A stretch of 55,989 nucleotides of DNA, filler included, from Platydemus manokwari (lineage: Eukaryota): the NCBI GenBank assembly GCA_037951405.1. It is 6 parts of 6 records of this genome, joined end to end, with 100 filler letters (N's around TTAATTAATTAA, not from the genome) between each part and the next. Parts side by side here need not be neighbours in the genome. Positions count along the whole stretch, not along the records: positions 19,043 to 28,500 come from JBBMOY011247208.1; 5 more parts are not named here. One strand, given 5' to 3'. The position numbers were made by a program, and so were the translations under genes. Below the pieces are notes generated by a model. That model saw only the letters and a program-made list of their open reading frames with translations, had not been told where the DNA came from and ran no database searches. Numbering within the stretch: position 1 is the first letter of the stretch; the number at the start of each line of letters is the position of its first letter. Positions 19,043 to 28,500 of the stretch are shown in pieces.

Positions 19043-19299
19043 AATTTTGTTTTGTTTGTGTTTTGTTTTTTTTGTTTAGCGAAAAAACCGGAAAGGAATT
19101 ACCGACACACCTGGTATATTGAATAAAACAATGAAATACATTTGAAAATACAGTCGGAATTGTTTTTTTTTCATTTATTTATTCTTCGTCTACTATTTTT
19201 AAATATATTGATAATTTTTGCTTCCACCAAAAAATAGCTATTGTTTTTGTTCATGACTGAAATTGTAAGTTGGTTTATAATGGTTCACTTAATTAAAAG

Positions 19300-20320
19300 A
19301 TTATCTAAATTGATCGCATTCACTTTTAACTTTAATAGGTGCGAATCTTTAAAGAACTAAAAAAACTTTTTAAACTTCAAAATCGGAATTGTGAAGTCAG
19401 GATAATATAAGCTAAATATAAATGAATAGCAATAAGTTATAAGCTGTAATAAGTTTCATTAGATAATGTTCTAATTAGCAATAACATTTTAAATATCTTG
19501 AAAATTTGGATAATTTGTTGTTTATATTCATGATGATTATATCCAATTTTATCAATTCGAATAAAATCAGAAAATACGTTTTATCTTTATTTGTTAATGT
19601 ACAGCTTCAATTTGTATGTTTTTAATTGAATGAAAATCTTTGATGGTAAAAAACAAGTGTATAGTTTGTTGCGGATGTAATAATGTGGAAAATAAGAGAA
19701 CGAATCAGTAATTAGATAATGTACTTATGTTAATGGATATTTAAATTGGTTAAATAAATCGTATTTGAGTATTTCTCAATTAAATAGCTACAGAAATTTG
19801 AAAGTTAAGCATTTATAAGGTCCTTTTCAGTATTAAGATGATCAATATTTAGATCAAGTGGTAAGATTAAACTCTAGAAAAGCTACAAAGCATGAAATTT
19901 CTGTATCAGATTCTGAAAATATTAAATATCTAAATGTAATTGAGAAGATAGACACTTTATCTAAGAAAATTGTCAAATCTTTAATTATTTCTGCTGGAAT
20001 CCATTTTTTATTGTAAATATAGGAGTCAGTGTTAGACCACTACAAATATCCTTATTTAAAATTGGAGTTGGAGTCAAGTAAGTTTTTAACACCTTCAAAC
20101 TCCTGATGTATTGACCTATCCTACTGACATAAATCTATAATTTTATTTGTAATTTTGGGAATCAAAACATTGGATAGAAATTGAGCACACTCCGCATTTA
20201 CGAGCCATCGTCTGTAAATGTCACGACAGAGTATATTTCCAGTAGAAGCTAGAGGAAAACTGTGGTTTGTTGGTATTGACACTATGAAGGTGCCGATTAG
20301 CACTTGTAATTTAGTTAATA
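19300..20320 (-). mobile_element. Possible hAT transposase relic
   Basis: FP..STGNI, TFTDDGS*M, IQCF and C-terminal LAYIILT...KSFFSSLKI occur in hAT order (HTG.NI, VTDNA.NM, CxxH, ER.FS dimerisation domain). Confidence 0.38.
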
Positions 20321-20629
20321 AATATTTGTATCAAACTTAATTTCATTTCCCAACACATCAAGTTATTAAAATAATCTTACAATTAGAGTTTTATCAAAAA
20401 CATTTTCATAGTTTTATACTAGCATTAAACATAATTATCAAAATAAAATAATAATTTAAACATGAATTATAAATAACAATATGGGTTTTATATCAAATCA
20501 AATTAAAATGGAACAATTGGTTTAATAATAATTCAATCTCATAAGATAAATGCTTTCTAACTTTATATGCATTGTTACTACCTGTTATGTAAAAATTCAT
20601 TCACCGAAATTTTAAAATTAGCTATAAAA

Positions 20630-21650
20630 TCTTTTTTATTGAGGTTTTTGAATTAATATGGTTTCTGATTACATCGTTAGCAGTTTCAAAAACTAGCCCA
20701 ACACAGATTCGTTCAACTTGTGCGCTATAAACCATTAAGAAAATGGATTGATCAAAACAATTTATTGCATCCATTACAAAAAAGCCTTGGCCCAACAGCC
20801 GGATGAATTGAACAAAACCTAACTCTAAAAATGATTCAAGAGTGATATCGTGATAAAAAGTAAACAAATCTCCGCATTGGCTTTCTTGACATTAAAGAAG
20901 CTTTTATTTTCTTAAGTATCGATGCTATGTTAGCAGTCCTAAAAAGAATGTGTGTGTCTAAAAAAGCCACTACAATAATTAACGCTATATACGCAAACTT
21001 TAGTACTTCCTTATATAGCAAATGCATCGCAAATCTGATAAACATAAAAAGAGACGTACAGCAAAGATGCCCAAATTAATTCCTTTTATTTAATATTGCA
21101 ATTAATCTACTAATAATTAAAATGGACTTTTGTCCGAGTAAATTATTAGTACAAGAAAATCACAAAATCTCATGTCTAGCAAATGCCGATGACATTGTAA
21201 TAGTTGATTAGAATGGAAATGGATTTCAATAACAAATAGACAGTGCATGCTTGCTCAGGAAACAAATAGGATTCAAGTTCAAGCCATCTAAATGCGCTCA
21301 CCTATTAAATAAAGGCTTAAACAAAAGACATGCTAAAGACTTTACTATGTACGGAATGACTAAATCAGAACTATCAATAAAATGCAATTATTGATATTTT
21401 GGAGTTAACTTTTCGCTGAAACATTACAGCTCAATAGAGAGTATTTGTACCACCGAGTCGATCTAAACGGAAAAATTAGAGAAAAGTATTATTTTATTTT
21501 GGTAGAAATTAGATACGTGTAATGTCTTTATTCATAGCAAGACTACATTCTTTGTCAAGAACTACTATGTATCATTTAGAAAAAATGAATCAATCATCTA
21601 TAAGTTTTATTTTATAAGGCCATACAGATGCCTTTCAAACGTTAAGAATG
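20630..21650 (+). mobile_element. Non-LTR retrotransposon RT relic (R2/NeSL/Utopia-like)
   Basis: KWIDQNNLLHPLQK, GFLDIKEAF, IKRDVQQRCP..LLFNIAI, ISCLANADDIV and IGFKFKPSKCA occur in RT domain order, interrupted by stops. Confidence 0.8.
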
Positions 21651-22630
21651 TTATTGTTAATCATTCAAGATATTTCATCAATCCAAGAAAACGAAAAATT
21701 CAAAAGTATAGTAGCGAAAAATAATTAATTCACATTATTCTGATTTAAAATTAAATTTTTAATAAAATACTTTCACTTGAAATATACGAAAAATAGCTAA
21801 GACCTCATTTCTTAACTTAAGCCATTATTTGTAACGAATCATTTGATTGAGAGTGAAAGAATGAAAAACTTATCTGTAACAAAGTTCGGCCTCATTTGAA
21901 AATATTCCAGTGATCGTAATATAAGTACAAATGCATGGTAATAATGGTGAAAAAATCAATTTCCTCTATTTGGCGTTTATGAAAAAAATGTTTTAAAACA
22001 GATTAAATTCGTTCCTGGGCTTTCACGTCTAATTTACAAGAAATGTGACTAAATTGATTAGAATAACAAAGGTTATCTTTAACTTATCGGAAATTAGCTT
22101 TCATTAATAATTTGAGCGGTCTCTCAACAAAATGAAGACAAATCATACATAATTATAATTAAACCATTGAAAAGGTTTCTTAATGCTTTCTATTCATGAG
22201 TTTCGGAAAGGATATCAAATCCACCACTGCATGATTTTTTTCTTACAGTTTTTTCAAATCAATCTGGTCAGCAATTTAAGACTAGTCTCGAAATCGAAAA
22301 ATATACCATCTGCGATTGCTCGCGTCTACAGAAAATGACTCAATTTGCGGACAATATGATATCATCAATGTACAATCCAAAAATCAACAAAACCTGTACG
22401 ATAGTACTTCTATTAATGTGTTACTAGCTTATCAAGATGCACCAATTATGAAACCACCATATAAATCCATTTGTCTAAATATATTGAATTTGCTTCACAA
22501 TAATAATGTCGTTGTCTTAATTATGTTGTTGTTATTGGTTGTGTTTCAGCAACTATATTTACTCTTCTTTTGTTGAACCAGCAACATTTCATATTGAATT
22601 GAAATTAAGCGAAATTCAGAATAATCCTAA

Positions 22631-25600
22631 ATGATTGCTCTGGAAGATGTAAACTACTTTATGATGATTTTATTTTTTATTATTTATTAATAAAATTCTA
22701 GAAAGGGGTTGAGAAACCGTCTGAGAAACATAAAAAGAATAAGAAGAAAGGAGAGAAGGACGAAAATCATCTGAAAAAAGAAATAGAGACTGACGATCAC
22801 ATAATTAGTTTAGAAGAACTATATATCAAACTGCAAACAGATCCAGATTCAGGTTTAACTCCGGATGAAGTGGAGTTGGCTTTATTGTTTCTTATTAATT
22901 GGTTTAAAATTTTACACAGAATTCGATTAGCACGAGATGGTATAAATGCGTTGACTCAAGTTAAAGGTACTCCAGAAATAGTGAAATTCATTAAAACCCT
23001 TGTGGGAGGTTTTTCTATTCTGCTATGGGTAGGTTCGATACTCTGCTTTATTGCTTATGGAATTCAAGCCGGAACTACTATAGATGCTCCAAAAGATAAT
23101 GTAATTGATTACTTCATATAGAAACAGTCATTAATGTTAAATAAAGTTGTATTTGGGAGTCGTTTTGGCATTCGTTGTCATATTTACTGGTTGCTTTTGT
23201 TACTATCAAGATTCAAAATCTTCTCAAATTATGAAATCATTCGGTAAAATGGTTCCTCAAGTATGTATTTATTAATTTCATTAAAATCACCCAATTTAAT
23301 CCTATTCTTTATGGCTGTTGTTAGTCTTGTCTTTTTAGAAAGCAATTGCTTGTCGTGGAGGAGTTTTACAAGAGGTCACTACCGAATCTTTGGTGAAAGG
23401 GGATATTGTGGAAATAAAGTTTGGTGATCGAGTACCTGCAGATGTACGAATGATAAAATCTAGTGGATTCAAAGTAGATGCATTACGTGTTTTATAAAAT
23501 GAAATAATGTCGAGAAAAGGTTGATAATTCAGCATTGACCGGTGAATCAGAACCACAAGCAAGAAATACGGAATGTTCTAGCAACAACATATTGGAAACA
23601 TCAAACATTGCCTTTTTCTCAACTAATGCCGTGGAAGGTAGAAAATATTTTGAATATCTTTAATGTTTTATTGAATATCTTCCATTCAGGTACATGCAGA
23701 GCCATTGTGATAAATACCGGGGATCATACCGTGATGGGTCGCATTGCTAATCTCACCAGCACCTTAACAATGGGAAAAACACCGATTGGCAAAGAAATTG
23801 AACACTTCATTCATATAATCAGCGCAATTGGTGTATCTCTTGGAATAATATTTTTTATAATTGCCTTTGCTATGGGATCGAAATGGTTAGAAGCGGTTTT
23901 ATTTCTGATTGGTGTAATTGTTGCAAATGTTCCTGAAGGCATGCTGGCAACTGTTACTGTGAGTCATAACTTGATGTTATCATCTATAAAATATTTTTCA
24001 AATCTTAATAGTACAAAACTATTTTTGAAACAAAAACTGTTGACGTGATATAATAAATATTATAAATTATAATATTCATCATATTCGATTAATATAATAG
24101 CATATCATTATAATTTAAAGGTTATGTTGACCTTAACTGCTAAGAAAATGGCAAGAAAAAATTGCTTGGTCAAAAACTTAGAAGCCGTTGAAACTCTTGG
24201 ATCCACCAGCATTATATGTTCGGACAAAACTGGAACACTAACTCAAAACGTAATGACTGTAGCTCACACTTGGTACGATAATAAAATCAATGACTGTCCG
24301 ACTTCAGAAAACCAAATGGGTTAGTAACAAAAATATCGAATTCATTAAAATCCCTACTTCACTGAAGGTTTGACCAACAAACAAAACAATGCAACTTGGG
24401 ATGTCTTAGTGCGAGTGGCTGTGTTGTGCAATCGAGCACAGTTCAAAGCAGGAGAAGAAGAAAAAGTTATATGGAAAAGAGAATGCACTGGTGATGCATC
24501 TGAGTCAGCTTTATTGAAATATGGTGAACTGTCCAAAGGTGGAATAACGAAGTATCGTGAAGAAAATCATAAAATAATCGAAATTCCATTTAATTCAACA
24601 AACAAATATCAAGTATATTTTCCCATAAAAAAAAATTGTTCTCATAGTTCTGTAGGTTTCAATACATGAAACCAATGATGGTGATCCTCGATATTTGCTA
24701 GTGATGAAAGGTGCTCCAGAGAGAATTCTGGAACGATGCTCTGTTATTCTAATAGATGGTCAAGAAATCGAAATTGATGATCACTGGATAAATGAATTTA
24801 ATCATGCATACATTGAGATGGGTGGAATGGGAGAACGGGTCCTAGGGTTCTGTGATTATCGGCTAGATGAAAAGGAATTTCCAAGGTTTATACATTGATA
24901 ATTCTCGAAAAATATTGCTATATATATACATATATTAATTGCATTATCTTCAGGGGTTACCCTTTCAATGCAGAAGAAATTAACTTTCCAATAAAAGGCT
25001 TTCGATTTGTTGGATTAATTTCAATGATAGATCCTCCTCGACCAACAGTACCGGATGCTGTTGCAAAATGTCGTTGCGCTGGAATAAAAGTCATTATGGT
25101 AACAGGAGACCATCCAATTACTGCTAAAGCGATATCGAGATCAGTAGGGATAATAAGTATGGATAATAAGACGGTGGAAGATATCGCTCTTGAAAGAGGA
25201 GTTTTACCAGCAGATGTTAGATTTTTTAAAAATTTTCAATACATGTATACTCCTAACAGATAAATCCGAGAGAAGCTAAAGCCTGTGTGATTCATGGATC
25301 AGATTTAAAGGAACTAACTCCTGACCAATTAGATGAAATTTTAAAATATCACGATGAAATTGTATTTGCAAGAACAAGTCCGCAGCAAAAATTACAAATT
25401 GTTGAGGGATGTCAAAGACAAGGAGCTATAGTTGCTGTAACTGGAGACGGTGTCAATGACAGTCCTGCATTGAAAAAAGCTGATATCGGTAGGTATTTAT
25501 ATTTTCTTTTCTTGAATATTCCAAAATCGTTGGGAGAATTATTGATTAAAAATAAATACTGTTTTTCAAGCAATCTGGAGAAGTAAATTATTTTGTAGTT

Positions 25601-27491
25601 TCTGATTTCAGGAATTGCAATGGGAATTGCGGGAAGTGATGTTAGTAAACAAGCTGCTGATATGATCTTACTGGATGATAACTTTGCATCAATTGTTATT
25701 GGGATTGAACAAGGACGAAAAATATTTGATAATTTGAAGAAATCGATAATTTACATTCTTGTAAAAACAATTCCCGAAATTGTCCCATTTCTTGCCTATA
25801 CGTTGGTGAATATACCCTTAGCTCTTGGTACCATTACAATTCTCTGTATTGATTTGGGAACTGATATGGTAATTTGATTTTTAATGATTTAGTTTCACGA
25901 GACTCAATGGCATATTATATGTAACTTCAAAAACAAAATTTAAAATACCTTTTATTTGTGTTTAGTATTTTTATTTGAATAATTTACTTTTATCGTATTT
26001 TCAGTTATTATTTTTGTTTCCATTTTCGAAAGTAGCTTTTAAATATTAATAAATTATGCGGCAATTTTAAATTTGACTACTTTCATTATAATTAATTTTC
26101 GCTCATCAGATAATTTTATATATAATTGCTATGTTTGATTTATTCGTATAATTCAGTTAAAATCTCATTTTTGAAGATGTCTAATAGTGACAAAACATAG
26201 TTTTAAATCAAAGTTCCCATCCTAATCACAACACTACTATAAGATTATTTGAGTTTTTAAATTTGGATTTTTTAATTATAAATTGATTTTGTCGACTCCA
26301 GACATGTTTGATAATGCCATTGCTTATTTTATAAAATAATTGCAAAAATTGAGAATATCTCTCAATTTGCTTCTAATGTTAAAAAGGGGTCCTCGCTAAT
26401 TTTCAATAAATTGCAATTCGGCCTACTTTTCCATTGTTTCAAATAATCAAATTTTATGAGATTTTGAAGTTAATTAATTATTGATTTCAAACAACTAAAA
26501 TTGTTATTAAGTATTTTAATAAAAAATTCAAAATGTTTTTAAAGAATATAATTAAATAAACTATATCTAATTTTGCAATACACTCACCAAATTAAAAATT
26601 TTATTTTAGGACCTTTTTTAACTTTATTGTTATAATTTGAAATATCAAGTCGTTTCTCATTTCCAATTGTATTCTCTTATCACCAACGCATAAATACACA
26701 AATACGATGAATTTATGTAGATTTTATTTCCAAGAAATATATTTAATTTCCCAGAAATTTATTTAGATGCCAGCAATAGCGCTAGCTTACGAGGGAGCCG
26801 AATCAAATATAATGAGGCGAAAACCTAGAAACCCTGTTAAAGATAATCTGGTAACTACGAAACTTATCTCCTTGACACATGGTCAACTAGGCATAATACA
26901 AGCTACTGGCTCATTTTTTGCATATTTCGTTATCATGGCTGAAGAAGGTTTCTTGCCACTTCGATTAATCGGCATACGTTCGGATTGGGACAGTACAGGA
27001 ATAAATGATCTCAAAGATTCTTATGGACAAGAATGGGTAAGCAAAATATAATATTTACAAATATAATATATAACTTATAGACCTATAAACAAAGAAAGAC
27101 GTTAGAAACCACTTGTTACAGTGCATACTTTGTCTCGGTAATGATACAACAGTGGTTTAACATAATGCTCGTCAAAACTCGAAGAAACTCACTCTTTCAA
27201 CAAGGAATGTGGAATCACCAACTTACTTTCTCCATGTTTTTCGAAACAGGATTGGCGATTTTTATAATCTATTGTCCAGGAGTAAATGAAGTATTAAAGT
27301 TGTCACCTCTAAGGTAAAATTAAGGAAGTCATAAAGTATCGTAAAAATTGATTATCACAATTGTTTGTAGATTCTCGTGGTGGTTTATAGCGATTCCTTT
27401 TGGATTTTATCTTTTGATCTTTGATGAAATGCGTAAAATTATTTTACGTCGAAACAAGAAATCAATTTGGTTGGCTAGAGAAAATCCATAA
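22631..27491 (+). CDS. P2C-type (Na,K/H,K family) ATPase alpha subunit, 16 exons, ~1017 aa, atypical ion-binding sites
   Basis: Hand-spliced on GT-AG introns. Exons: 22631-22648, 22702-22874, 22920-23100, 23147-23260, 23339-23473, 23520-23637, 23690-23958, 24121-24319, 24368-24612, 24656-24885, 24954-25215, 25260-25488, 25612-25868, 26767-27036, 27081-27313, 27371-27491. Total 3054 nt, in frame, ending in TAA. Motifs: [73 protein letters not shown]. Exon 1 (18 nt) is the least certain. Confidence 0.97.
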
Positions 27492-27749
27492 TTGTGACTG
27501 TCATTATAAACGTTTAATAATCTGATGTTATAATTTTTAGACTATCATAATAATTACATTTGTTTTGTTTATTTAATTCTTTATTTTCTTAGTTTTTTAT
27601 TTATTATTTTCATTATTATTAGCAAGTTACATATTTAAAAAAGTAAGATGACAAAACAAGGCAACATCATGTCATAACTTTATTAATAAAAAATTCTGAA
27701 TATTTAAACAAATATCTCTAATATTATCTTACTTCCCTCTCACATTCTT

Positions 27750-28110
27750 TTTAACGTTTTTCTCAACTTCTCGTTTCGACAGTATTGAATTGTTAAATCC
27801 TTCTTTATTGATGATTACTGCTGATTTTATGCCTAACAAATTTAATAAAGCTGGGATGTGGCCTGCCTATCTTAGCCCATTGGTGTTACGTTAATCTTGT
27901 GAGTACATTTCATTCCCTTGATCATTCTCCTTACGATATTGGAAATCAAAATTAAATCCTGAAAATTTTTCAAACCATAAGGAGAACAAATCGGATTTTT
28001 GGTTTTCTCGAGTATATCGATGCTTTGTGATCAACGGCAGTTGCAAACTTTTACCAAGTAAATAATGCTTAAAATTGATGAGTTTAAGGGTCAATGGTTA
28101 TTTTATTTTA
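27750..28110 (-). mobile_element. Ty3/gypsy pol relic (RNase H C-terminus into integrase)
   Basis: FKHYLLGK...LWFEKFSGFNFDFQYRKENDQGN matches FRHYL.G..F / RW...L..F.F.I.YR.G..N. Confidence 0.7.
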
Positions 28111-28500
28111 TAAGGATTTTAACTCGTTTTATCAATATCCGAAACTAATAAGTTCTCTGAGTCCTTATGGCCCACAAGTAATCACTAAACCTCGACTGAC
28201 TCTAATCCATGTATGAAGACGATAAAGTGATGAGGAGATTTTGATGATGATAAAATTTACAGAAATGATTGTGAAACCTAATGTCACTTATCGATTCAAT
28301 ATTACAACAACCTTGTGTTTTATTATATGTTTATTACTATAACAGTAAATACAATTATACACCTAATAAAAATAATTCAAATACTAATATGCACTTAATA
28401 AAAATTAGATTTTAGAACTACATTTTGGATCTTCCAGCAAATGCCGGGCATAACAGGAACAATTGATCTTCTGCACCAGACGATCTTCTTGAGTGCGTCG

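Follow-up and report, generated by a model that had tools for sequence, protein, structure and literature searches.

The third sodium site of the Na,K-ATPase is built from two carbonyls (Y771 and T774) and two side chains (Q923 and D926) (PMC5026471). Both H,K pumps keep the equivalents of Gln923 and Asp926, but there the aspartate is neutralised by a salt bridge with an arginine at the C930 position (Arg949), while site I is destroyed by K794, a tethered cation that takes the place of Ser775 (PMC9463140, Young et al. 2022). In the same work, C930R turned the Na,K pump electroneutral, and D923N of alpha3, the equivalent of D926N, lowered Na+ affinity more than 100-fold with K+ affinity unchanged. 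Trp924 and Pro778 were necessary for building site III in an H,K background, and the structure of the engineered SPWC-ngHKA showed a water-filled cavity leading to the M8 aspartate and capped by the C-terminal tyrosines; Young et al. predicted strict H+ selectivity to depend on simultaneous destruction of sites I and III (PMC9463140). When YY or KETYY is deleted, the affinity for Na+ falls and inward leak currents arise (PMC2894553, PMC2812498), and D926N mutants are still activated by Na+ when its concentration is high (PMC5026471). Stoichiometry is also affected, C930R leading to 2Na:2K and the Artemia lysines to 2Na:1K, and the enzyme is trapped in an E1-like state when Ser775 is exchanged for a bulky neutral residue (PMC10812997). 

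We compared with these systems a gene of the assembly GCA_037951405.1 (Platydemus manokwari), lying in a window of 55,989 nucleotides (filler included) that joins six parts of this genome. The part concerned, positions 19043-28500 (JBBMOY011247208.1), is AT-rich (23-36% G+C, about 30%; introns of 43-57 nt occur) and holds a multi-exon gene for the alpha subunit of a P-type IIC ATPase on the plus strand, the last two exons of which carry the finding described here. Its features are as follows.

22633..27491, plus strand: entire gene for an alpha subunit of the P2C (Na,K/H,K) family, some 16 exons, introns mostly 43-160 nt and one of 898 nt
22633-22650, plus strand: putative first exon (ATG)
23690..23958, plus strand: exon M3-M4, gap-free to pig alpha1 residues 246-334, with VANVPEG, N324 and E327 (GAA, 23935-37)
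25612..25868, plus strand: exon M5-M6, gap-free to alpha1 residues 724-810, E 7e-39
26767..27036, plus strand: exon 14, end of M6, M7 and M7-M8 loop, found by tblastn and matching Cation_ATPase_C at 3e-11; Q854 kept
27081..27313, plus strand: exon 15, M8-M9, with Q923, W924, F925, N926, V930, R933 and E954
27314..27370, plus strand: intron 15, 57 nt, GT...AG, phase 2
27371..27491, plus strand: exon 16, M10 and cytoplasmic tail, TAA stop at 27489-91, without terminal Tyr-Tyr
27685..27690, plus strand: first AATAAA 3' of the stop, a possible poly(A) signal

With an ordinary full-length pump from a metatranscriptome contig (L006) as the tblastn guide, residues 16-1003 of the guide were matched in order over 22765-27482, in exons free of stops and frameshifts. 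Inspection of the sequence showed canonical splice sites, and at the last junction the donor GT of exon 15 (27314-15) splits an Arg codon AG|A between exons 15 and 16. Translation of the exons yielded DKTGT, TGES and TGDGVND, the C-terminal membrane domain is Pfam Cation_ATPase_C (PF00689), and the beta-subunit interaction motif SYGQ occurs as DSYGQEW at the end of exon 14, in the M7-M8 loop. The top PDB matches of the exons were all Na,K or H,K alpha chains. By its motifs, its PF00689 domain and SYGQ, the gene is thus assigned to P-type ATPase subfamily IIC.

Some details of the surrounding sequence were also recorded. The 45-nt intron at 22875-22919 (GTTGGC...ACAG) is in frame and stop-free, so that a naive ORF reads a 15-residue insertion there; splicing it out restores canonical spacing. 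At the end of M6, the junction 25866-25868 / 26767-26769 reads ...GTDM|MPAIALAYE, with Met for the usual Val810, and DMMPAI is likewise found in an ordinary pump on contig L003. Upstream of the gene (19043-22600), no convincing gene was found; a SecY-like Pfam match on the minus strand at 20839-21075 was below threshold (18.8 bits, with the cut-off at 32.2; E 0.001). The final 70 nt of the piece (28430-28500) are clearly richer in G+C than the DNA around them and may belong to the next gene, as the beginning of an exon truncated by the edge of the piece. Rfam on the piece and Pfam on the flanking ORFs gave nothing usable.

We then examined M8 and the C-terminal tail. In a phmmer search of PDB chains, 78 of the 78 residues of exon 15 aligned without gaps to Na,K-ATPase alpha1/alpha3 (E about 1e-23), covering residues 900-977 of the pig enzyme (3wgu). 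In this register, W924 (27153-55) is kept, position 925, canonically Ala, is Phe, D926 is replaced by Asn (AAC, 27159-61) and C930 by Val (GTC, 27171-73), and Q923, R933 and E954 are retained; it is the register in which an earlier note on this DNA had read the exon, with the same residues at 924, 926 and 930. The last exon aligned to M10 and the tail of alpha3/alpha1 as far as ...GWVEKE, where the canonical W-V-E-K-E-T-Y-Y becomes W-L-A-R-E-N-P-stop, one residue shorter and devoid of tyrosine. The translation of exon 16 thus confirmed the tyrosine-free RENP ending given in the same note, whose wording, a "loss of KETYY", was slightly overstated: T-Y-Y is indeed lost, with N-P instead, while K-E is retained as R-E. 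Two classical Na,K features, Asp926 and the C-terminal aromatic pair (..TYY), are therefore absent here, and two others, Trp924 and Pro778, which belong to the site III scaffold, are present.

The M5-M6 exon is altered as well. Compared with the canonical YTLTSNIPEI, M5 shows T772I, T774V, S775K (25764-66) and N776T (25767-69), and Y771, P778, E779, D804 and D808 are kept. Ser775 and Asn776, which in classical pumps are ligands of sites I/III and I/II, respectively, are thus Lys and Thr, and the site II ligands N324, E327, E779, D804 and D808 are all intact. Judged from these residues, the changes in M8 and the tail are one part of a more extensive rebuilding of sites I and III, from which site II has been spared.

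We next searched for relatives by means of word searches with ORF-sized pieces, which led to gene-caller fragments in public assemblies, and examined the contigs. Four related loci from two other samples carry the signature over whatever part each contig covers.

L001, Logan SRR33002330: exon 15 87% identical, reading QQWFNILVVKTRRN; tail identical (SIWLARENP-stop); M5 off the contig
L004, Logan SRR33002330: more divergent paralog, reading QQWFNLLVVKTRRN; tail DIWLVREHV-stop; M5 off the contig
L010, Logan SRR33002330: exon 15 reading QQWFNLLMVKTRRN; tail GSWFSREAA-stop; M5 IKTIPE (K775, T776)
L009, ENA ERZ27256860: exon 15 and tail off the contig; M5 LVKTIPE

L010 is the only contig with the whole signature (M5, M8 and tail). 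L001 and L004 show no variation at the key residues of exon 15, L010 has the same ones, and the position of intron 15 is common to L001, where the phase is also the same, and L004. A survey of relatives' C-termini, which the earlier note had suggested, showed that L001, L004 and L010 all lack YY and share the pattern W-[LF]-x-R-E-x-x-stop. Between the window and L001, exons 14-16 (621 nt) gave a pN of 0.089 and a pS of 0.75 (saturated), and the identity of introns and 3'UTR was at background, near random. A pN this far below a saturated pS, together with background-level introns and 3'UTR, indicates that the unusual residues are fixed and constrained in a small paralog clade: the signature residues are maintained by strong purifying selection. 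SRR33002330 itself contains at least three distinct genes of the K775/N926/no-YY clade, L004 and L010 being closer to each other than to L001, so that either the family is multi-copy in the organism sampled there or the sample is a mix of species.

Residues at the same pocket positions were also observed outside this clade. A P2C fragment on another contig (L011:1369-1722, ENA ERZ19571839, protein P0169) has His at the Ser775 position, a titratable residue where the clade has Lys, together with Thr776 (TLTHTIPELIPFLAY); its M8 and tail are off the contig. Lys at the Asn776 position was seen in P0179, P0196, P0026 and P0115 (TSKVPEV, TSKVSEV, SSKIPEL), environmental or assembly fragments, as in one of the two lysines of Artemia alpha2KK. 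Pocket lysines thus seem to recur in nature.

As to the ancestry of the gene, all exons scored markedly higher with Na,K than with H,K chains: exon 15 scored 85 bits against Na,K chains and 47 against H,K chains, and the M5-M6 exon 135 bits against Na,K and 115-116 against H,K. On a poorly resolved exon-15 tree (78 columns), the window, L001, L004 and L010 formed a clade (SH-aLRT 86), placed with weak support within the Na,K-type representatives and separate from P0076 and P0078, the two that resemble ATP12A. P0078 aligns to ATP12A chains and reads IQQLADLVIRKTRRNS; the sequence of a solved ATP12A chain is IQQIADLIIRKTRRNS, with Ile, Asp and Arg at 924, 926 and 930, respectively. With P0078 included, residue 924 of the H,K pumps is Ile or Leu. 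These chains and PMC9463140 agree with what the earlier note had stated of vertebrate H,K pumps, namely that D926 is conserved and that Arg replaces C930. P0012, which this tree places as the closest outgroup of the clade, has Val926, Ser930 and a tail ...SWIENETYY, after which its gene call runs on for 19 residues. Convergence with the H,K pumps, meaning an origin from a Na,K-type pump apart from the vertebrate ones, is supported by these sequence comparisons.

Wider searches added little to the clade. The profile search with exon 15 was made in a library collapsed at 50% identity and consisting almost solely of fragments, and its 150 representatives included no close relative of the exon, although positions 926 and 930 were diverse among them; some of the representatives (for example P0001-P0003 and P0032), used solely as rows of the tabulation and the tree, resemble Na,K-ATPase fragments of mammals and may be human. 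A word search with the 58-aa exon-15 ORF gave no candidates, and exact look-up of the 94-aa ORF of the window and of P0012 returned no record for either. Scanning JGI metagenomes with the patterns QQWFN and FQ[QS]GMWN retrieved just three ordinary QWAD...TYY pumps, suggesting that the clade is absent or rare there, and the ESM Atlas returned generic Cation_ATPase_C clusters. The literature search found no described invertebrate Lys775 or H,K-like clade. The C. elegans CATP proteins were considered as members of the clade and rejected, being far more divergent.

Asn926 was also encountered in the divergent P2C fragments P0050, P0051, P0064, P0084, P0086, P0090, P0095 and P0130 among the 150 representatives, so that D926N as such is not unique. 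Where the tail was complete, an aromatic pair (YY, YW, YF or FW) was present in 27 of the 30 representatives with Asp926 and in 2 of the 7 with Asn926; its loss (3/30 versus 5/7) gave a nominal Fisher p of 0.002. On the best tree, which is poorly supported, the state changes about 7 times, with one independent pair on supported branches. We regard the association between Asn926 and tail loss as a lead and make no claim from it.

Set beside the described pumps, the gene combines features of several. Like ATP12A and ATP4A, it has a Lys at the Ser775 position, a neutralised charge at the M8 Asp position, the site II ligands, the beta-subunit motif and a predicted net pocket charge of -3. Unlike them, it has Asn926, Val930, Trp924, Thr776 and Pro778 and no YY, where the H,K pumps have Asp926 with Arg930, Ile924 and Asn776, and ATP12A has Ala778. 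With canonical Na,K alpha subunits it shares the overall sequence, the intron position GQEW|TY, W924, Q923, E954, R933, K766 and the spacing of Q111/N122 in the ouabain site. Single substitutions found here mimic the studied mutants D926N (alpha3 D923N), C930R and delta-YY/delta-KETYY, each of which is by itself deleterious or pathogenic in the canonical Na,K enzyme, whereas here the changes are natural, occur together (S775K, N776T, T774V, D926N, C930V and tail loss) and have become fixed throughout a clade. Artemia alpha2KK (PDB 8k1l) is likewise a natural invertebrate alpha paralog with a lysine introduced into the pocket, and its stoichiometry is reduced; however, alpha2KK carries N324K and N776K, while this gene has N324, K775, T776 and N926, and the stretch of alpha2KK equivalent to exon 15 scored 73 bits against this gene, like ordinary Na,K pumps.

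It is well grounded in the residues that the M8 aspartate is neutralised directly, by Asn, with Val930, Trp924 and no YY cap, and that this would be another route to the same electrostatic end state as in the H,K pumps. The convergent loss of site III by a different molecular route, as the earlier note had it, agrees with the Na,K-type scores and the exon-15 tree; the functional loss of site III is itself what we infer from mutants, in which, as that note had also stated, D926N and YY deletion cut Na+ affinity (PMC9463140, PMC2894553, PMC2812498), the deletions with an inward leak. Drawing on published Na,K and H,K work, we propose that the ammonium group of Lys775, as a tethered cation, would fill site I or block it and that Asn926 would take away the negative charge needed by Na+ at site III, an effect that the Asp-Arg salt bridge has in H,K pumps. 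With site III dead, the YY plug over the C-terminal water/proton path to 926, where a titratable carboxylate is now missing, would no longer be needed and may have been lost for this reason. By our reckoning, four carboxylates and one Lys would give the pocket a net charge of -3, the value that five carboxylates, one Lys and one Arg would give the H,K pumps. The cycle would then run through essentially site II alone, with one H+ (or one Na+) exported per K+ imported.

[quoted passage not shown] The narrower version, in which S775K, Asn926 and loss of the YY cap make it a Na+-independent electroneutral pump for H+/K+ or another one-for-one cation pair, arisen from a Na,K-ATPase in an invertebrate lineage and independently of the vertebrate ones, is put forward tentatively. 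The H,K pumps show nothing equivalent to N776T, and K775 in a Na,K background might have other consequences, as bulky neutral substitutions at Ser775 do (PMC10812997).

It is also possible, as a minority reading, that the protein is still a Na+/K+ pump of low Na+ affinity and reduced stoichiometry (for instance, 1-2 Na+ per K+), analogous to the alpha2KK of brine shrimp, and that it would pump against steep gradients instead of exchanging H+ for K+. Its overall sequence is of the Na,K type, and W924, P778, Q923, E954 and Y771 are kept; since W924 and P778 imply that part of the site III scaffold persists, we keep this reading open. Natural pumps with pocket lysines go on transporting Na+, at 2Na:1K, and C930R pumps do so at 2Na:2K (PMC10812997, PMC10756188). 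D926N mutants, Na+-activated at high Na+ (PMC5026471), pump Na+ at low affinity, and Na+ transport may thus persist here too. Nevertheless, the lysine is at 775, as in H,K pumps, rather than at 324 and 776 as in alpha2KK, N776, a ligand of sites I/II, is replaced as well, and the loss of site I (through Lys) together with site III is predicted to give H+ selectivity (Young et al., PMC9463140). That several ion ligands are altered together could alternatively mean that the ion sites have decayed and that this alpha-like protein no longer pumps or is regulatory, serving as a receptor, a scaffold or a partner of the beta subunit; for nematode CATP-1, functions independent of pumping have been suggested (cited in PMC11631496). 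We consider this improbable, since nothing is missing from DKTGT, TGES, TGDGVND or the site II ligands, pN is far under pS in the transmembrane exons, and the changed positions are themselves invariant across paralogs: decay would not fix identical residues in every paralog.

An artefact, whether through pseudogenisation, faulty assembly or an overlooked alternative last exon restoring ...TYY, appears very improbable. A YY-stop search in 4.6 kb of flanking DNA found a sole motif, TAT-TAT-TAG in TTTTTTATTTATTATTTTCATTATTATTAG (FFIYYFHYY-stop, 27596-27622), which lies 104 nt past the stop and follows a possible ...TTAG acceptor, and no conserved downstream YY exon. FFIYYFHYY is, however, unlike any pump tail and lies in AT-rich, low-complexity DNA, and it has no counterpart 156-246 nt downstream of the stop in L001, L004 and L010; we therefore judged it a chance occurrence and rejected it as an alternative exon. 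In addition, M10 and the tail form one exon both here and in the ordinary pump on L003, and W-L-x-R-E recurs as a conserved tail at three further loci, so an alternative exon supplying YY is unlikely. The gene is open throughout, and constraint together with recurrence in related loci led us to set aside pseudogene, sequencing error and mis-assembly.

The gene adds a natural variant to a well-known family of pumps and is relevant to the ion selectivity of P-type ATPases, since the determinants of Na+/H+ selectivity in P2C pumps have so far come from mutated vertebrate enzymes. A natural, selectively maintained clade that combines Lys775, direct neutralisation of site III and the absence of YY would provide a ready test of what Young et al. 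(2022) proposed, and likewise of the idea that the C-terminal tyrosines serve site III. If the narrower, Na+-independent reading is true, H,K-type pumps would have evolved at least twice, and the Asp-Arg bridge with Ile924 would be one of several solutions. To our knowledge, invertebrates have no ATP4A/ATP12A orthologues, and the clade may provide a molecular candidate for the H,K-ATPase-like activities of these animals.
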